From: Scyliorhinus canicula
Taxonomy: Eukaryota
NCBI RefSeq assembly: GCF_902713615.1
Contig: NC_052153.1
Span: forward strand, 191,317,394-191,381,393
Direction of reading: 5' to 3'
DNA: 64,000 nt
Shown here piece after piece: positions 6,323 to 63,205 of the stretch. Below the pieces are notes generated by a model. It worked only from the letters and a program-made list of their open reading frames with translations, was not told where the DNA came from and ran no database searches. A program made the position numbers and the translations under genes. The stretch's first letter is position 1; each line of letters begins with the position of its first letter.

Positions 6323-6608
6323 CATTCCGTGCAGTTCTAACATGTAATACATATGATACTGTCTAGATTTTGCTCGCGTGTGCTGATAACCTTTCTACAT
6401 CTCTATTTACTCTCCCCCTCCCCGTCCCACTCTCTCCATCCCACCCTCCCCTCTCCTTCCCCTGGTCAGGTATAAAGCCATGGGCAACACGGTTTGGGGG
6501 TGGCCATGGGAAGCTTTACTGTTGTGCTCGGGAACTGGGTCAAAACCTTTTATTTAACTCTTGAGTTGGCGTTGGCCCCTCCACTTCCACTGGCACCAAC
6601 TAACAGCC

Positions 6609-7105
6609 CTCTCCTCACACTGGGCTGGGGAGAAAGGGGACGCAGTGGCACTGTCACCCTCTCCTCACACCGGGCTGGGGAGAAAGGGGACGCAGTGGCA
6701 CTGTCACCCTCTCCTCACACCGGGCTGGGGAGAAAGGGGACGCAGTGGCACTGTCACCCTCTCCTCACACCGGGCTGGGGAGAAAGGGGACGCAGTGGCA
6801 CTGTCACCCTCTCCTCACACCGGGCTGGGGAGAAAGGGGACGCTGTGGCACTGTCACCCTCTCCTCACACCGGGCTGGGGAGAAAGGGGACGCAGTGGCA
6901 CTGTCACCCTCTCCTCACACCGGGCTGGGGAGAAAGGGGACGCAGTGGCACTGTCACCCTCTCCTCACACCGGGCTGGGGAGAAAGGGGACGCAGTGGCA
7001 CTGTCACCCTCTCCTCACACCGGGCTGGGGAGAAAGGGGACGCTGTGGCACTGTCACCCTCTCCTCACACCGGGCTGGGGAGAAAGGGGACGCTGTGGCA
7101 CTGTC
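6609..7105. repeat. Minisatellite, 10 x 50 bp
   Basis: Unit CTCCTCACACCGGGCTGGGGAGAAAGGGGACGC(A/T)GTGGCACTGTCACCCT, starting every 50 bp from 6611 to 7061. Confidence 0.97.
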
Positions 7106-7385: not shown

Positions 7386-7579
7386 ATAAAAGAGGCAATG
7401 GGCAACTGGGACTTCGGCTGCTGCCAGATTGACAAGCTTCTTGGCCAATCAGCGCTGTGGAAGAGGTGGCCCAGTCTCCAAAGCAGCCAATCAGCTTTGG
7501 TAATGATTGGGATCAGGCAGAAGCTTTTCCTGGATTGCATACATCTCTGTTTTAAATCATTTTAAACATCGATACTCAC

Positions 7580-7975
7580 CATTCACTGTCAGATTGGTTC
7601 CTTGCCGTACTTGAAATGTGTCGATGTTGAGCTCCACACGGCAGTGATAAACTTTGCTGTCCGCCCGGCTCAGTCGCTCCATCATTATTGAGGCATCATT
7701 GTTGCTGAGATTGCCCACGAATCGGATTCGGCTCCCAGCATCCCGCTGCTTCCCACTCTCACACGGTTCACCCTGTGAAGGGTCTGTACCAGGATATGTA
7801 CATCGGAAAGTTATTTCACGATTCCCTGGGTCAGAGGTGAACCACATCACGGAGCCGGTGATGCTCCGATTAGTGGGTGGGGGGTGGGTGAAACGACACG
7901 GCAGGACAGCCGTTCCCCCCTCCCCCACACTCACACCATCCGCCACGGTCATTGTCCAACGATTCAGTGAAAGCC
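7580..7975 (-). CDS. SIGLEC15: Gene A exon 2: Siglec-15-like Ig V-set domain (396 bp, phase 1-1), essential Arg intact
   Basis: Translation WTMTV..AVLPCRFTHP..VMW..FRC..C..RIRFVGNLSNNDASIMMERLSRADSKVYHCRVE..GTNLTV matches the Siglec-15 V-set pattern as I recall it (PCTFTHP, FRC..C extra Cys pair, YFCRVE). Polypyrimidine-CAG acceptor at 7976-7977 and G|GTGAGT donor at 7579-7578. Orthology versus paralogy is not established. Confidence 0.8.
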
Positions 7976-9209
7976 CTGTGCAGAGAGAGAGAGAGAGAAT
8001 ATTAACACAGCACAGGGACAGACATCAGTTAGGCCTGAATAACATTCAGGCTTGGGCTGAAAAGTGGTACGTTCAATTCATTGCATAGAAGTGCCATCCA
8101 ATAACCATCTCCAACAAGATAGGTCAATAAACAGGGGTCATAAGAACATAAGAACCAGGAGCAGGAGTCGGCCACCTGGCCCCTCGAGCCTGCTCCGCCA
8201 TTCAATGAGATCATGGCTGATCTTTCGTGGACTCAGCTCCACTTTCCAGCCCGAACACCATAACCCTTTATTCCTTTATCCTTAAAAAAATTGGATGGAA
8301 TTCCCCCCCCCCCCTCACGCCGGGTGGGAGAATCGCCGGGGCACCGCGCGGGTCCCGCCACCCCGCCCTGGCACGCGCACGGGATTCCTCCCCCCCCCCC
8401 CCCCCCCCCCCAAACAGGTGCTGCAAGATTCACGGCTGGTCGCTGGGAGAATCGCCGCTCGCCGTTTGTAATGTGCGGCGGGAACAGCGCGGGAACGCTG
8501 GGGGGGGGGGGGTGGTCTGTGGGGGGGGAGGAGGGGGGTTCTTGCAAGGGGGGGAGCCTCAAAAGGGGTCTGGCCCGCGATCCGTGCCCTCCAATCGGCG
8601 GGCCGGCCTCTCTGAAGGAGGAACTCCTTTCCTCCGCCGCCCCGGTAGATCCATCCGACATCTTCTTGCGGGGCGGCGGAGGAAAGGAGTTCCTCCTTCA
8701 GAGAGGCCGGCCCGCCGACGGGCCAGACCCCGTTTGAGGACCCGCCCCGGTGCAAGAACCCCCCTCCTCCTCCCACAGGCCGCCCCTCCCCCCCTCCCAC
8801 GTTCCCGCGCTGTTCCCGCCGGCAGCGACCAGGTGTGGACGGCGCCGGCGGGAACCTGTCATGTTGGGGCGGCCGCTCGGCCCATCCGGGCCGGAGAATT
8901 GCCGCGCGTGCGCGGGTAACTTCATTTACGTGGCGCCGGCTGTGTCATTTACGCTCCTAGCCCCCTGGTGGTGGGAGAATAGGGGGCTGGGAGCGGCCTC
9001 CGACGCCGGAGAGAACTCCGGGACACTTAGGGCGAGATTCTCCGCAAATGCGGAGAATTGTAAAGGCTGCCGTGGGACAGGCCGTGACCCACGGCGGCCT
9101 TCACGCCCACTTCCGGGGCCGATTCTCCCCCCCGGGCGGGGCTAGGAGCGCGGCCCCGTGTGTCACAGCGGCGCGGCCTTGACGATGGTCGTCAAGACCG
9201 CACGTCAAG

Positions 9210-38775: not shown

Positions 38776-38927
38776 GTCCGCCTCAATTGGCGTACCGACT
38801 TAAAACCACCTTCGTCTGCACAATTAGGGATGGCCAATCAATTTTAGCCTTGCCAGCGACTCACAACCCTGTCAATGAATTCAAAATAAATGTAAAGATT
38901 GAACAGTTATTATTGGAAAGCACCTAC

Positions 38928-38994
38928 TATAACCCAGCAGCGGGGTCGACAGCAGGACTGTGGAGAGCCCAATGTAGACAGTAGTCATTGCCAT
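38928..38994 (-). CDS. Gene A exon 1: signal-peptide (leader) exon MAMTTVYIGLSTVLLSTPLLGY
   Basis: 67-bp ATG exon with a hydrophobic core, ending A|GTAGGT (phase 1, compatible with the V exon). It is an inverted homolog of 60032-60098 with the same length and donor. Splicing to 7975 is inferred. Confidence 0.7.
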
Positions 38995-39718
38995 TCCTCC
39001 AGTGTTTTTCATCTCTCTCACTCGCTGCTCCTTCTCACTTGGCACTGAAATGCAGAAGTTACTCGAAGTGAACTTCTGGTGAAATTCTCAAGATATTAAT
39101 CACTGTTGCTCAATTTAGCAGCGAATGTGATGTCCGCTTGCGGTGAGCAGGAGCTGAGATGTTTATTTAAAACTCGGAAATTTGGCACAAACCCCAGCAT
39201 TTGTAGAGAAGGAGAGATTCTGCATCGGCTTTCAATCTCGTCCTCAGACTGTCCATCACGTTCCATAGCGATCAAATTGATTAGTGGGGAGGAAGGGTGT
39301 TGGGACGATGGTGCACAAGTAACCCACTCCTATGTATCGTGCGGCACACCAGAGGTAAAATACGCGCTGTCTGCTGATTTCCCCATTGCCGTCTGCAGCC
39401 AGTCGTACACAAGCTGCGAACATCGGAAGGGGGGTGTGGCCATCTAAAATGGCCGCTCGCATAGATCGCTGGGAAATTTGGCCAAGCCCGAGTACAGACA
39501 GGCTGCCGCCTGCAAATAAACAAAAGCTGCAGCGCAGACGTATGCAGAAACTAACACAGGAGAAAAGCCATTAAAAGGCCAACCCGGGACAATGGATTCC
39601 AGGTAGAAACTGACAATAAGCGGCAGACTCAGCGGCGCCTGCTTTCCTTATTTGGGAAGGCCTACGTGCTTCGGACACAAGAGACTATGGCCGACCGGGA
39701 CCCGTCCGGCCATCAAGG
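38995..39718 (-). promoter_or_regulatory. Putative upstream/promoter region of gene A (left half of a split bidirectional region)
   Basis: About 80 bp upstream of the ATG is homologous to the gene B upstream sequence (TTCTGCATTTCAGTG..GGAGCAGCGAGTGAGAGAG). CpG-containing stretch with GGGTGTGGC (KLF/Sp-like) and AAAATGGCCGC (YY1-like) near 39430-39456. Motif matches alone are weak evidence. Confidence 0.35.
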
Positions 39719-54690: not shown

Positions 54691-57658
54691 TTCAGCAGGG
54701 GGTTGGGAACCTGAATTGTAGCTCCAGTACACAAGAAGTTGAGAGTAGTGAGGTCATGAGTAAGGTTTCAAAGTTGCAGGAGTGTACCGGCAGGAAGGAA
54801 GGTGGTCTAAAGTGCGTCTACTTCAATGCCAGGAGCATCCGGAATAAGGTGGGTGAACTCACCAGGTTAGTACCTGGGACTTCGATGTTGTGGCCATTTC
54901 GGAGACATGATAGAGCAGGGACAGGAATGGTTGTTGCAGGTTCCGGGGTTTAGATATTTCAGTAATCTCAGGGAAGGTGGTAAGAGAGGGGGAGGGGTGG
55001 CATTGTTAGTCAAGGACAGTATTACGGTGGCTGAGAGGACATTTGATGAGGACTCGAATACTGAGGTAGTATGGGCTGAGTTAAGAAACAGGAAAGGAGA
55101 GGTCACCCTGTTAAGGGTTTTCTATAGGCCTCCGAAAAGTTCCAGAGATGTAGAGGAAAGGATTGCAAAGATGATTCTGGATAGGAGCAAAAGTAACAGG
55201 GTAGTTGTTATGGGGGACTTTAACTTTCCAAATATTGACTGGAAACACTATAGTTCGAGTACTTTAGATGAGTCCATTTTTGTCCAATGTGTGCAGGAGG
55301 GTTTCCTGACGCAATATGTAGATAGGCCAACGAGGGGCGAGACCGTATTGGATTTGGTACTGGGTAATGAACCAGGACAGGTGTCAGATTTGGAGGTAGG
55401 TGAGCACTTTGGTGATAGTGACCACAATTCGATTACGTTTACTTTAGTGATGGAAAAGGATAGGTATATACCGTAGGGCAAGAGTTATAGCTGGGGGAAA
55501 GGCAATTATGATGTGATGAGGCAAGATTTAGGATGCATCGGCTGGAGAGGAAAACTGCAGGGGATGGGCACAATGAAAATGCGGAGCATGTTCAAGGAAC
55601 AGCTACTGCGTGTCCTTGATAAGTATGTACCTGTTAGGCAGGGAGGAAGTGGTCGAGCGAGGGAACCATGGGTTACTAAAGCAGTTGAAACACTTGTAAA
55701 GAGGAAGAAGGAGGCTTATGTAAAGATGAGACGTGATGGTTCAGTTAGGGCGCTTGAGAGTTACAAGTTAGCTAGGAAGGCTCTAAAGAGAGAGCTACGA
55801 AGAGCCAGGAGAGGACATGAGAAGTCTTTGGCAGGTAGGATCAAGGATAACCCTAAAGCTTTCTATAGATATGTCAGGAATAAAAGAATGACTAGGGTAA
55901 CAGTAGGGCCAGTCAAGGACAGTAGTGGGAAGTTGTGCGTGGAGTCCGAGGAGATAGGAGAGGTGCTAAATGAGTATTTTTCGTCTGTATTCACACAGGA
56001 AAAAGACAATGTTGTCGAGGAGAATACTGAGATACAGGCTACTAGACTAGAAGGGCTTGAGGTTCATAAGGAGGAGGTGTTAGCGATTCTGGAAAGTGTG
56101 AAAATAGGTAAGTCCCCTGGGCCGGATGGGATTTATCCTAGGATTCTCTGGGAAGCTAGGGCAGAGATTACTGAGCCTTTGGCTTTGATCTTTGATCTTT
56201 AAGTCATCTTTGTCTACAGGAATAGTGCCAGAAGACTGGAGGATAGCAAATGTTGTCCCCTTGTACAAGAAGGGGAGTAGAGATAACCCCGGTAACTATA
56301 GACCAGTGAGCCTTACTTCTAGTGTGGGAAAAGTCTTGGAAAGGTTTATAAGAGATAGGATGTATAATCATCTGGAAAGGAATAATTTGATTAGAGATAG
56401 TCAACATGGTTCTGTAAATGGTAGGTCGTGCCTCACAAACCTCATTGAGTTCTTCGAGAAGGTGACCAAACAGGTGGATGAGGGTAAAGCAGTTGATGTG
56501 GTGTATATGGATTTCAGTAAAGCGTTTGATAAGGTTCCCCACGGTAGGCTATTGCAGAAAATACAGAGGCATGGGATTCAGGGTGATTTAGCAGTTTGGA
56601 TCAGAAATTGGCTAGCTGATAGAAGACAGGAAGACAGGTGGTTGATGGGAAATGTTCAGACTGGTGTCCAGTTACTAGTGATGTACCACAAGGATCTGTT
56701 TTGGGGCCGCTGCTGTTTGTCATTTTTATAAATGACCTGGAGGAGGGCGTAGAAGGATGGGTGAGTACATTTGCAGATGACACTGAAGTCGGTGGAGTTG
56801 TGGACACTGCAGAAGGATGTTACAAGTTACAGAGGGACATAGATAAGCTGCAGAGCTGGGCTGACAGGTGGCAAATGGAGTTTAATGCAGAAAAGTATGA
56901 GGTGATTCATTTTGAAAGGAATAACAGGAAGACAGAGTACTGGGCTAATGGTAAGATTCTTGGTAGTATTGACGAGCAGAGAGGTCTCGGTGTCCATGTC
57001 CATAGATCCCTGAAAGTTGCCACCCAGGTTGAGAGGGTTGTTAAGAAGGCGTACGGTGTGTTAGCTTTTATTGGTAGAGGAATTGAGTTTTAGAGCCATG
57101 AGGTCATGTTGCAGTTATACAAAACTCTGGTGCGGCCGCATTTGGAGTATTGCGTGCAGTTCTGGTCGCCTCATTATAGGAAGGATGTGGAAGCATTGGA
57201 AAGAGTACAGAGGAGATTTACAAGGATGTTGCCTGGTATGGAGGGAAGATTTTACGAGGAAAGGCTGAAGGACTTGAGGCTATTTTCGTTAGAGAAAAGA
57301 AGGTTAAGAGGTGACTTAATTGAGGCATACAAGATGATCAGAGGATTAGATAGGGTGGACATTGAGAACCTTTTTCCTCGGATGGTGATGTCCAGCATGA
57401 GGGGACATAGCTTTAAATTGAGGGGAGATAGATAGAGGACAGATGTCAGAGGTAGGTTCTTTACTCAGAGAGTAGTAGGGGCGTGGAATGCCCTACCTGC
57501 AACAGTAGTGGACTCGCCAACACTAAATGCATTCAAATGGTCATTGGATAGGCATATGGACGATAAGGGAATAGTGTAGAGGGGCTTTAGAGTGGTTTTA
57601 CAGGTCGGCGCAACATCGAGGGCCGAAGGGCCTGTACTGCGCTGTACTGTTCTATGTT

Positions 57659-58740
57659 CTACTCCATTGCGGAAGTCAGGGCGGTCACCAAAGTCTACCA
57701 GGTCTGCGCTGAGTGCAAACCGCATTTCTACCGGCCAGACCGAGCACACCTGGTGCAGGCCTCCCATCCCTTTGAACGCCTCAGCATGGACTTCAAAGGG
57801 CCCCTCCCCTCCTCCGACCGAAACGCATACTTCCTGAACGTGGTCGATGAATACTCCAGATTCCCCTTTGCCGTCCCATGCCCTGATATGACGTCTGCCA
57901 CAGTCATCAAACCCCTCAATAGCATCTTCACTCTATTTGGTCTCCCCGCTTACGTCCACAGCGATCGGGGATGCTCCTTTATGAGTGATAAGCTGCGTCA
58001 ATTCCTGCTCAGCAAGGGCATTGCCTCGAGGAGGATGACCAGCTACAACTCCCAGGGAAACGGGCAGGTGGAGAGGGAGAACGCGAAGGTCTGGAACGCC
58101 GTCCAGCTGGCCCTACGGTCTAAAAATCTCCCGGTCTCCCGCTGGCAGGAAGTCCTCCCCGACGCCCTCCACTCCATCCAATCGCTACTTGGCACTGCGA
58201 CTAATGCAACCCCCCCCCCCATGAAGGGCTCCTTGCCTTCCCTAGGAAGTCCACCTCCGGGGTTTCGCTCCCAACGTGGCTGGCAGCTCCAGGACCCGTT
58301 CTCCTCCGCAAGCACATGTGGCTCCACAAGGCGGACCCGTTAGTCGAGAGGGTACAGCTACTCCATGCAAACCCGCAGTGGTGTACCCTGACGGCTGCCA
58401 AGACACAGTCTCCCTCAGGGACCTGGCACCAGCTGGTCCCCCCCCCCCCACCTCCAACTGCCCCGGCGCCACCCATCCTCCCCCCAGCGCACCTCACCAC
58501 AGCCCCCGCTCCAGGATGATCCGCCCTCTCATGGGTTCCACCCGGGGATGAAGATGAGGACTACACGCTCCCGGAGTCACCGGCGACCAAGCCTGCATCA
58601 TCACCGGGACTACGGCGCTCACAACGGGGGATCAAGGTACCCGACCGGCTAAATTTGTGAACTTTTCCCCAAACTGTACACTTTAAAAAGGCTCACATAC
58701 ATGCAAATAGTTTTTCCACCACCCCTGCTGGACTCTTTTT
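57659..58740 (+). pseudogene. Gypsy integrase, 3' part
   Basis: Resumes as YSIAEV..CAEC; SMDFKGP, HSDRGCSF, GNGQVERENA (DDE core); frameshifted downstream. Confidence 0.9.
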
Positions 58741-60031: not shown

Positions 60032-60098
60032 ATGGCGGTGGCTTCTGTCTACGTTCGGCTCTCCACACTCCTGCTGTCTGTCCCGGTGCTGGGTTACA
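60032..60098 (+). CDS. Gene B exon 1: signal-peptide (leader) exon MAVASVYVRLSTLLLSVPVLGY
   Basis: ATG at 60032, hydrophobic leader, A|GTAGGT phase-1 donor at 60099; lies 885 bp upstream of the V exon acceptor. Confidence 0.75.
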
Positions 60099-60394
60099 GT
60101 AGGTGCTGCTTCTTCCTAATAATTCCTCAAAGTTGTTTTGAATTGTGCTTTTTATTACTTCCCTGTCGGATTCTAGAGTGGGTGATGTCCAAAGCAGAGC
60201 TGGTGGAACAGGGTGGGGTAGAATGATTGGGAAGATTTGAGCAAGGTGCAGAGAACATGATCCAGGACTAGGCCATGCAGCACCCCCCCCCCCCCCCCCC
60301 CCCCCCCTCCCCCAACTCGAGCCTGAGCCCAGATTCAATGATTGGGGTCTGAATTCCATCCACTTGGATCTGGCTCACTAACGCCCTTCAAGTT

Positions 60395-60810
60395 TCATAG
60401 AATCCCTACAGTACAGAAAGTCTGCACCCACCCTTTGAAAGACCACCCTATCTAGCCCCACTCCTCCGCCCTATCCCCATAACCCCACCCCACCTAACCT
60501 GCACACCTTTGGACCATGGGAGGAAACCAGAGCACTCGGAGGAAACCCACACTGACATGGGGAGAACGTGCAAACTCCACACAGACAGTGACCCAAGGCC
60601 GGAATTGAACCCGGGACCCTGATGCTGTGAGGCTGCAGTGCCAACCACTGTGCCGTCCAAGGGAAGGAAATCTGCCCTCCGTACCTGGTCTGGCCTACAT
60701 GTGACTCCAGACACACAGCAACTTGGTTGACTCTTAATTGACCTCGGGCATGGGCAGCAAATGCTGACCCAGCCAACGAGACCCACAGCCCATGAACGAA
60801 TATTTTTTAA
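60395..60810. mobile_element. HE1-type SINE (minus, ~60395-60655) adjoining a second-family SINE body (+, ~60656-60810) in gene B intron 1
   Basis: Similarity to the SINE copies at 36450 and 7095. Confidence 0.75.
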
Positions 60811-60983
60811 AAACGTGCAAGCCCGCACTGTCACTGCATCAGGATTGGACAATCGCAGTCTGACGAGATGATGTATCTATTTTCACTCTGTAACAGACTC
60901 AGTATATTGAGCCTCGCAGTTTGTTTTTGACACACTGCTGTCTGTCCCTGTGCTGTTTTAATATTCTCTCTCTCTCCGCACAG

Positions 60984-61379
60984 GGTATTCTCTGAATAAT
61001 TGGACAATGACCGTGGCGGATGGCGTGAGTGTGGGGGAAGGGGGAACGGCTGTCCTGCCGTGTCGTTTCACCCACCCCCCACCCCCTAATCAGAGCGTCA
61101 CCGGCTCCGTGATGTGGTACACCTCTGACTCAGTGAATCATGAAATAACTTTCCGATGTACATATCCTGGTGCAGACCCTTCACAGGGTGAACCGTGTGA
61201 GAGTGGGAAGCAGCGGGATGCTAGGAGCCGATTCCGATTCGTGGGCGATCTCCGCAACAATGATGCCTCAATAATGATGGAGCGACTGAGCCGGGCGGAC
61301 AGTGATGTTTATCACTGCTGTGTGGAGCTCAATATCGGCAAATTTCACACACTGAGAGGAACCATTCTGAAAGTGAGAG
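60984..61379 (+). CDS. SIGLEC15: Gene B exon 2: Siglec-15-like Ig V-set domain (396 bp, phase 1-1), essential Arg replaced by Cys
   Basis: Open exon of about 81% aa identity to the gene A V exon. (CT)n-CGCACAG acceptor ends at 60983; G|GTGAGT donor at 61380. Motif reads YHCCVE (TGT at 61319-61321) versus YHCRVE in gene A. Confidence 0.8.
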
Positions 61380-61659
61380 GTGAGTATCGATGTTCAGGGT
61401 GGCAGCTGCCCCCTCCACCTCCAGTTCAATGGGTAGAGACGCCCAAACGGCCGTGGAGGTGATTTATTTTGCTCCAAACGGTTTATAAACGGGACACATT
61501 TCCATTGACCTGATTGGATGGTCTTTCAGTGCACTGAATGGCCATTCAGGTAGAACGCTCTGATTGGCTACTCAGGGATTCCAGGGAGGCATTTCAGCAG
61601 GTGAGCGGCAACAGGGATAGTCAGAGTGTGAAAGGGAGTGAGAGAGTCGGAGTGAGCAT

Positions 61660-62355
61660 TCGTGAAAAAGAGTCAGAGAGAGTGAGGGGATAGAGGGAGA
61701 GAGTCAGAGTGGAGAAAGGAGAGAACGATAGAGAGTCAGAATGGGGAAAGGAGAGATAGAGAGTCAGAGTGGGGAAAGGAGAGAAAGATAGAGAGTCAGA
61801 GTGGGGAAAGGAGAGAAAGATAGAGAGTCAGAGTGGGGAAAGGAGCGAAAGATAGAGAGTCAGAGTGGGGAAAGGAGAGAAAGATAGAGAGTCAGAGTGG
61901 GGAAAGGAGAGAAAGATAGAGAGTCAGAGTGGGGAAAGGAGAGAAAGATAGAGAGTCAGAGTGGGGAAAGGAGAGAAAGATAGAGAGTCAGTGTGGGGAA
62001 AGGAGAGAAAGATAGAGAGTCAGAGTGGGGAAAGGAGAGAAAGATAGAGAGTCAGAGTGGGGAAAGGAGAGAAAGATAGAGAGTCAGAGTAGGGAAAGGA
62101 GAGAAAGATAGAGAGTCAGAGTGGAGAAAGGAGAGTCAGAGTGGGGAAAGGAGAGAAAGATAGAGAGTCAGAGTGGGGAAAGGAGAGAAAGATAGAGAGT
62201 CAGAGTGGGGAAAGGAGAGAAAGATAGAGAGTCAGAGTGGGGAAAGGAGAGAAAGATAGAGAGTCAGAGTGGGGAAAGGAGAGAAAGATAGAGAGTCAGA
62301 GTGGGGAAAGGAGAGAAAGATAGAGAGTCAGAGTGGGGAAAGGAGAGATAGAGAT
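61660..62355. repeat. Purine-rich minisatellite, ~20 x 32 bp
   Basis: Unit GTGGGGAAAGGAGAGAAAGATAGAGAGTCAGA recurs at 61769, 61801, 61833 ... 62333, with one 20-bp shortened unit at 62121. Confidence 0.95.
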
Positions 62356-62359
62356 TCAG

Positions 62360-63205
62360 GGTGGGTATTAAGATCCAGGAAGCAGAACGGGAGGGTGAAC
62401 ATCTGTTTATTTACAGTCACAAAAAGTCTGCCGATGGCAGCAAATATATACACAGACTAAAGTTCTGTTAGGACAGCCAACTTGCCGGTCCCTGGCTGGG
62501 TCGGCCTTTATACTGTGTTCATGTGAGCCCCAGCTGACCTGGCCTCCGCCCACTAGCGGGAAGCTCAGATTCCACGAGTCCCACAGGGAGATCAATCAGA
62601 GTATTCCCGTGGGCCACGCCTCAAATCTGAAAGCACCCCCTCTGCATAATCTGGAGGAGGCCTTCTGTGCCGCTTCCCACATGGTTGCGCTTCCGCCAGT
62701 GCCGGGCCTGGGTCAGGTGACATTTTTCGAGACCTCTGGAGGGATACAGCCGGGAGCCGGGGGGGGGGGGGGGGGGGGGAGAGGGGGGGGGGGGGGGTCT
62801 GCTCTGGACACGACATCGTCTGTGAGTGCAGGCGCTTTAGTGTCCATCTCCAAGCCTAAATTGTCATCGTCTTGACGGCCTGGGTTTTGAACCACAGCGG
62901 GCTGCATTCCTTGGAGTAGTCCATGAGGTGGTGGAGGTACCAACGTCTCTGGCCGGGCACCCTCTGAGGTGCGATCTCGAGATGGTCAATGTGCTGACGC
63001 AAGGCCTTCCCTTGGGTCTCGACCTGATAAGATACGGGCCCAGTTTTCTCCAACACACTCCCCGGGATCCAAAGGGCGCCGTCTCTAAAATTCCGGACAA
63101 AAATAATTGACAACGTCTCCTGACTTCCTGTGGTCACGATACTTCCTTTGCATATCTAGTTGCAGCTCGGTTTTCTGCCCAAACTTGGGTAAGTCAGACT
63201 TAAGC
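62360..63205 (-). mobile_element. Gypsy 3' fragment (integrase C-terminus and probable LTR)
   Basis: FVRNFRDGALWIPG..TGPVSYQV..RQHIDHL; TATAAA and AATAAA on minus within 62400-62515. Confidence 0.65.

Follow-up and report, generated by a model that had tools for sequence, protein, structure and literature searches.

Among proteins of solved structure, Siglec-15 comes closest to the first domain of the receptors dealt with here. An arginine on strand F of its V domain, R143, is salt-bridged to Neu5Ac's carboxylate and its exchange in R143A abolishes binding; the same domain has two disulfide bonds, C64-C142 and C95-C104, and CH-pi contacts are contributed by W44 and Y154 (PMC10264397). The zebrafish ortholog of Siglec-15 bound the tested glycans poorly (PMC7226832). 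Mutation of the essential arginine has been described for several primate Siglecs. Human Siglec-XII carries a fixed R122C exchange and has lost binding, chimpanzee keeps Arg at this position, and null alleles of Siglec-XII came later (PMC6288428; PMC12654080; PMC13358205). Great-ape Siglec-5 and chimpanzee Siglec-14 also carry mutations of the essential Arg (PMC6288428). Siglec-5/14 and Siglec-11/16 form pairs of activating and inhibitory receptors in which the ligand-binding domains are homogenised by gene conversion (PMC6288428; PMC5701461). PILR-alpha and PILR-beta make up another inhibitory/activating pair with a Siglec-like V-set fold and a critical sialic acid-binding Arg (PMC13358205), and some Siglecs, such as Siglec-6, are reported to bind ligands outside of the canonical pocket (PMC10122656).

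The stretch of DNA analyzed here (termed the window) comprises 64,000 nucleotides from the small-spotted catshark Scyliorhinus canicula, is free of N runs and has a CpG observed/expected ratio of 0.54. It contains the 5' parts of two related immunoglobulin superfamily genes, A and B. Gene B corresponds to LOC119970765 with isoforms X1 (XP_038661842.1, 347 aa) and X2 (XP_038661843.1), and thus both the gene and its residue Cys135, on which this analysis centers, are already annotated in RefSeq. Exon 1 (60032-60098, plus strand) consists of the ATG, the leader MAVASVYVRLSTLLLSVPVLGY and the first base of an Arg codon, is followed by a GT donor at 60099-60100 and matches residues 1-23 of XP_038661842.1. 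The first Ig domain, a V-set domain (Pfam E-value 4.2e-12), is encoded by exon 2 (60984-61379, plus strand), which is in phase 1 at both ends, with an AG acceptor immediately upstream and a GT donor at 61380-61381, and whose product is identical to residues 24-154 of the same protein. The remaining exons lie past the end of the window. From the complete RefSeq proteins, gene B encodes a leader, a Siglec-15-like first domain, a V-set-like second domain, a transmembrane segment with a Lys (VVILCIPLGVKLLPLLVMWII) and a short tail devoid of an ITIM, an architecture shared by gene A. The transmembrane Lys points at a DAP12-type 'activating' design.

Gene A is LOC119970764 and likewise already present in RefSeq (XP_038661840.1, 353 aa). 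Its exon 2 (7580-7975, minus strand) is in phase 1 with an AG acceptor and a GT donor, encodes a V-set domain (Pfam E-value 2.3e-13) and yields a product 100% identical to residues 30-160 of XP_038661840.1. Exon 1, with the ATG and the leader MKNTGGMAMTTVYIGLSTVLLSTPLLGY, was located at 38928-39012 (minus strand) in a tblastn search with residues 1-28 of XP_038661840.1 (100% identity), is followed by a GT donor and resides 31 kb upstream of exon 2 across retroelements, while the other exons lie ahead of the start of the window. The possibility that gene A is a lone duplicated exon is ruled out by this leader exon (39012-38928) and by the full 353-residue RefSeq protein. A third paralog, LOC119970771, has the same type of ectodomain and ITIM-bearing, i.e., inhibitory, tails.

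The two genes are arranged head-to-head with their leader exons 21 kb apart. The V exons (7565-8029 on the minus strand for A, 60934-61394 on the plus strand for B) are 91% identical over 465 bases and can be aligned together with about 50 bases of upstream and about 20 bases of downstream intron; the leader exon and 5' flank of gene A (38919-39068) and the inverted counterpart in gene B (60107-59961) are 85% identical. Outside these leader-exon and V-exon stretches, the two loci can no longer be aligned, and retroelements have taken the place of all that lies in between. Intron 1 measures 31 kb in gene A and 0.9 kb in gene B. In the former, 870-base direct repeats at 15273-16137 and 19870-20739, which are 94% identical and 4.6 kb apart, look like the two LTRs of a retrotransposon; in the latter, positions 60548-60597 fall within a SINE-like repeat. 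Further features of the window are two LINE-like copies in inverted orientation (9466-14714 and 52750-47484, about 78% identical) and an integrase-like ORF at 57654-58343. Intron 2 starts with a long tandem array in both genes. The arrays are non-homologous, that of gene A (6607-7105) being composed of 50-base units about 98-99% alike and that of gene B (61692-62365) of units of about 32 bases that are about 92-94% alike.

The difference at issue between the two V exons resides in a single codon. On the minus strand, gene A reads TAT CAC TGC CGT GTG GAG (YHCRVE), the conserved Arg being encoded by CGT at 7640-7638 and present in XP_038661840.1. On the plus strand, positions 61310-61327 of gene B read TAT CAC TGC TGT GTG GAG (YHCCVE), with TGT at 61319-61321 specifying Cys135 of XP_038661842.1. 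The motif YHCCVE is found in both RefSeq isoforms, each a complete protein with the transmembrane Lys. At this site, the C of a CpG in gene A is thus a T in gene B (TGC-CGT versus TGC-TGT). While four cysteines are encoded in the V exon of gene A (in the motifs LPC, FRC, EPC and YHC), there are five in that of gene B. Base by base, the original prediction was therefore borne out in that CGT in gene A is matched by TGT in gene B, that the change has the signature of a CpG transition and that it places a fifth Cys beside the canonical F-strand Cys.

The prediction had also named an assembly error as a caveat, and the reality of the base was checked by querying an index of sequencing runs with 61 bases (61289-61349) from which no 31-letter word can be drawn without position 61319 and which contain further gene B-specific differences at 61303, 61304, 61306 and 61333. 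Two words were sampled, and the outcome is to be read as evidence for presence only: Both T-spanning words occur in 13 runs of the same organism from six studies and at least nine samples. One of the six studies is a possible source of the assembly, such that runs from five studies besides the likely source carry the T, and several small runs were guessed to be RNA. In such runs, a longer query gave shares of about 0.4, close to the share of the exon in the queried stretch. Since T-spanning words are present in runs of six studies, an assembly error at 61319-61321 is very unlikely. One of the two words spanning TGT also turned up in a small run whose label names another organism; this run could stem from a close relative with the Cys allele or reflect a labelling or contamination issue.

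What is the function of the residue that has been replaced? In sequence comparisons, no solved structure matches the first domain better than human Siglec-15 (7zoz_A, HMMER E-value 1.6e-11) at about 30% identity, and in the HMMER alignment YHC-R-VE is superimposed on YFC-R-VE of Siglec-15, such that the site corresponds to R143, the canonical F-strand Arg. An AlphaFold2 model of the gene B first domain was calculated from 60 family sequences (mean pLDDT 81.5). When this model was submitted to Foldseek, 7zoz_A again came first (TM 0.76/0.79), followed by the lectin domains of sialoadhesin, Siglec-7, CD33, Siglec-10, -8 and -5. Among the best 26 matches in the PDB, all those identifiable by their title are Siglec lectin domains; four entries (6d48/6d49/6d4a) bear no title beyond 'Cell Surface Receptor'. 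An identity of the first domain as a member of the TIM family or as PILR was considered and rejected, as the best matches in sequence and fold include neither; PILR furthermore differs from the catshark proteins by its single-Ig ectodomain. Pfam and Foldseek thus concur in assigning an N-terminal V-set domain with Siglec-type fold to gene B.

The resemblance extends beyond the fold. LPC...YHC aligns with C64-C142 and FRC...EPC with C95-C104 of Siglec-15, and all four cysteines, corresponding to the B-F and the C'-C'' pair, are kept in genes A and B. The pocket aromatics are kept as well: W29 on the A strand and F143 on the G strand of XP_038661842.1 align with W44 and Y154, respectively, and in the family at large an A-strand W is found in 95 and a G-strand F/Y in 96 of 119 unique first domains. 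Together with the Y-x-C-R-V-E motif, in which the Arg immediately follows the F-strand Cys, and the transmembrane Lys on a short tail without ITIM, these features are shared with human Siglec-15 (PDB 7ZOZ; R143, K274), except that gene B has Cys where Siglec-15 has Arg and hence, by definition, lacks the essential Arg required of a functional Siglec. The F-strand Arg itself is present in gene A and in 95 of the 119 unique family first domains. Conservation does not extend to other Neu5Ac-contacting residues of Siglec-15, Y87, R153 and E155 (G-strand, C-C'), and this holds even for gene A with its Arg. The second domain is assigned to the V-set by Pfam and finds CD276, TIM-1/2/3/4 and the V domain of Siglec-15 among PDB sequences instead of the C2-set domain that occupies this position in Siglec-15. 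Furthermore, Siglec-15 is a single conserved gene, whereas the catshark proteins belong to a multigene family that comprises activating receptors as well as inhibitory ones with an ITIM. With its V-like second domain and its multigenic family, gene B is thus not a strict Siglec-15 ortholog, despite the two V-domain disulfides and the transmembrane Lys for coupling to DAP12/DAP10, without ITIM, that are typical of the Siglec-15 orthogroup.

Besides Arg>Cys, three changes at conserved positions are found in gene B only, T86A, G103R and N111D. In the D-E loop, gene B reads VGDLRNND (61247-61255) where gene A reads VGNLSNND (7712-7704), and the N-L-S glycosylation sequon has disappeared from gene B through N111D and S113R; in the family, 115 of 132 first domains have the Asn of this sequon. 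As Cys134 is the core-facing disulfide partner, the following Cys135 is expected to point outward on the GFCC' face and to be unpaired; strand geometry and the homology to R143 indicate that its side chain should be exposed there.

The direction of the change can be approached through the closely related Scyliorhinus torazame. The counterpart in this species, a protein named Siglec-15 (XP_072371756/7), reads YRCRVEL in the chromosome assembly and hence has the Arg, and so does a fragment from an independent draft assembly of 2018 (GCB82434.1). The S. torazame counterpart resembles gene B in its leader (21/23 residues identical), in the G strand (KFHTPKGTIVKVR against KFHTLRGTILKVR; KFHT..G..KVR) and in its activating anchor. 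Arg occupies the site in 11 of 11 close relatives aligned. Because the S. torazame counterpart and all eleven close relatives have Arg, this residue is ancestral, and Cys is a derived state that the S. canicula lineage acquired once it had parted from S. torazame. Three features of an Arg-mutated ('Roman-numeral') Siglec, a lineage-specific loss of the Arg, its presence in the sister lineage and an otherwise intact protein, are found for gene B. Like Siglec-XII, its closest precedent, gene B combines a lineage-specific Arg to Cys exchange in a V-set domain with an intact signalling part and a sister species that has the Arg. The two differ in that Siglec-XII is CD33-related, carries an ITIM, is inhibitory and has two V-set domains while gene B is Siglec-15-like and of the activating type with transmembrane Lys, and in that binding loss and its rescue by the restored Arg were demonstrated experimentally for Siglec-XII, whereas the loss is a prediction for gene B.

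Relations among the paralogs are complicated by mosaic similarities. V domains cluster by species, those of genes A and B of S. canicula with that of the inhibitory paralog and those of the S. torazame paralogs with one another, unlike leaders and membrane/tail parts that cluster by ortholog. The ectodomain of gene A is closest to that of the inhibitory LOC119970771 (112/131 identical residues in the V domain, 100/108 in the second domain), whereas its anchor and tail are of the gene B type (78/85 identical). The topology of the tree and the mosaic identities suggest that the catshark paralogs underwent gene conversion or exon shuffling as in Siglec-5/14. The grouping of V domains by species and of leaders and tails by ortholog indeed recalls Siglec-5/14 and Siglec-11/16; a difference is that the catshark V domains are 78-85% identical and do not form near-identical pairs.

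Gene B is part of a large family. An HMMER search of the full library returned 133 matches, 30 of them with E-values below 1e-10, and the profile search revealed a multigene family of sharks and rays with many paralogs per genome and with activating as well as inhibitory tails. Names given to its members at NCBI are inconsistent and range from Siglec-15, Siglec-12, sialoadhesin-like, pIgR-like and JAML-like to uncharacterized. A literature search for work on shark Siglec-15, including glycan binding by shark or ray members, retrieved nothing relevant from the collection of papers covered. About a fifth of the unique first domains (24 of 119) have replaced the Arg, and the event in gene B is therefore not singular. 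His is the most frequent substitute (nine), followed by Cys (four rows representing three genes), Gln and Gly (three each), Tyr (two) and Ser, Lys and Asn (one each). As His, Cys and Gln are products of single CpG transitions of CGN codons, mutation bias explains much of this spectrum. The three Cys genes, S. canicula gene B, Hemiscyllium ocellatum LOC132826502 and a gene for a 'Siglec-15' of Chiloscyllium plagiosum, fall into three separate supported clades of the tree, each beside Arg-bearing sisters, and Cys thus arose three times.

The distribution of the replacements over receptor types deserves attention. A residue other than Arg is found in 11 of 29 activating-type and in only 1 of 25 inhibitory-type members, for which the raw Fisher p of 0.003 is not readable as a probability because relatives share states. 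At least eight changes of the Arg state are required by the tree. Counting events gives a p of about 0.055 if seven of the eight changes fell on activating lineages, a split that is assumed and not derived from the tree, and a comparison of activating type and Arg loss in phylogenetically independent pairs leaves only two usable pairs and has no power. A bias of Arg loss toward activating members is accordingly suggestive only and not robust to phylogeny.

Taken together, we consider it most probable, at roughly 60%, that gene B encodes an intact two-Ig receptor in which the F-strand Arg went to Cys, with canonical sialoside binding lost or strongly weakened and the rest of the protein kept. 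A CpG transition from CGT to TGT in the S. canicula lineage, after the split from S. torazame, would have replaced the Arg, and canonical binding of sialosides would be expected to be lost or strongly diminished, while the V domain would have kept its fold, its A-strand Trp and its G-strand Phe, and the protein its second domain, membrane anchor and tail. Gene B may thus be an analogue, in a shark, of human Siglec-XII and other 'Roman-numeral' Siglecs. Loss of sialic acid binding is plausible by homology, and speaking of loss presumes a putative ancestral activity, against which stands the poor binding of the tested glycans by the zebrafish ortholog of Siglec-15. The divergence at Y87, R153 and E155, the V-set-like second domain and the three additional changes unique to gene B also speak against this reading. 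Gene B may conceivably continue to signal, and selection may have played a part, for instance if an activating receptor thereby escapes stimulation by self sialic acids. That T at 61319 is instead an error of assembly or sequencing or a rare variant private to the sequenced individual appears extremely improbable: Only two 31-letter words were sampled, but both are found in 13 runs, six studies and at least nine samples of the species and the RefSeq models carry the Cys as well. Much more serious is the case for relaxed constraint, in which the binding domain drifts after duplication or through redundancy with gene A, whose activating anchor and tail are the same, the hit at a hypermutable CpG is neutral and gene B, albeit with a still open frame, is turning into a pseudogene. 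The V exons of A and B differ in 36 of 393 aligned coding bases, ten of them in CpG context, and in 25 amino acids. These differences translate into Nd 30.5, Sd 5.5 and a dN/dS of 1.8, a value that is not different from 1 (Fisher p 0.41) and for which either relaxed constraint or diversifying selection could account. Neutral drift would also agree with the four changes that are unique to gene B at otherwise conserved positions, one of which contributed to the loss of the N-glycosylation sequon, with a terminal branch of 0.25 that is the longest among the S. canicula paralogs (0.036 and 0.17 for the others), with the prevalence of CpG-transition products among the Arg replacements of the family and with the path taken by human Siglec-XII, where R122C came first and null alleles followed (PMC6288428). 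On the other hand, the frame of 347 residues is fully open and the splice sites at exons 1 and 2 are intact, exon words are present in runs guessed to be RNA, and gene B is identical to gene A in 96 of 108 residues of the second domain and in 78 of 85 residues of the membrane-plus-tail region. Nor has its V domain diverged from the S. torazame counterpart (100/130 identical residues) to a greater extent than that of the Arg-bearing inhibitory paralog from its own counterpart (98/130), and the branch leading to the S. torazame activating counterpart is also long (0.19) yet the Arg is kept. We regard relaxed constraint as a rather unlikely explanation. The sequence comparisons argue against wholesale decay and would be compatible with relaxed constraint on the binding site. 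With this, the original interpretation is upheld in part. The Siglec-type V domain, the homology of the site to the essential F-strand Arg, with Siglec-15 R143 in the aligned position and Siglec-15 nearest by sequence and fold, and the parallel drawn to the Arg>Cys change of SIGLEC12, which is indeed R122C (PMC6288428; PMC12654080), have all stood, whereas the idea of a decaying copy sits badly with a complete 347-residue RefSeq protein, a tail so similar to that of gene A and a V domain that has diverged like that of the inhibitory paralog.

A different possibility is that Cys135, together with the new basic residues introduced by G103R and S113R, has conferred another ligand specificity or allows a covalent dimer to form via an unpaired exposed thiol, such that gene B would be a new receptor and not a disabled lectin. 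Following core-facing Cys134, the side chain of Cys135 should face out of the GFCC' sheet, judging from strand alternation and the homology to R143, and the cysteine count of the V domain is odd (five versus four). The three independent Arg>Cys exchanges in sharks and the enrichment of Arg loss in the activating type would be expected if activating receptors were selected away from self ligands, and binding beyond the canonical pocket is on record for some Siglecs, as reported for Siglec-6 (PMC10122656). However, a ligand, a dimer or selection is without direct evidence, Cys is the plain CpG-transition product of CGT/CGC and its recurrence can therefore be mutational, and the enrichment finds no support in independent contrasts (two usable pairs; p about 0.055 on the assumed split). 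We hold such a re-specialisation to be quite improbable. Somewhat less remote, albeit still doubtful, is a broader proposal that concerns the whole family: Arg loss may be no random decay but a recurrent, selected fate of DAP12-type activating members, in which signalling is kept and the site for self sialic acids is retired or retuned. Across more than 400 million years, this would be convergent with primate Siglec-XII, -5 and -14, and Cys135 of gene B would contribute a novel property such as covalent dimerisation or another ligand. An intact receptor that has lost or strongly weakened its canonical sialoside binding through Arg>Cys is the reading of gene B that we prefer over all of these.

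In itself, the finding concerns a single amino acid difference in an already annotated gene and is one of many such differences in the family. Siglecs without the essential Arg are, however, a classic sign of an immune lectin that has been retired or redirected, and so far they have been known mainly from primates. The same event is now seen in a cartilaginous fish, and our survey of first domains suggests that it is frequent and affects mainly activating-type receptors. This possible bias is the most interesting lead to emerge from the analysis. Genes A and B and the inhibitory LOC119970771 would form a handy natural Arg/Cys set for probing what shark receptors bind. If Arg loss is indeed frequent and biased in this way, paired-receptor dynamics around the recognition of sialic acid would be far older than the mammalian CD33-related Siglecs.
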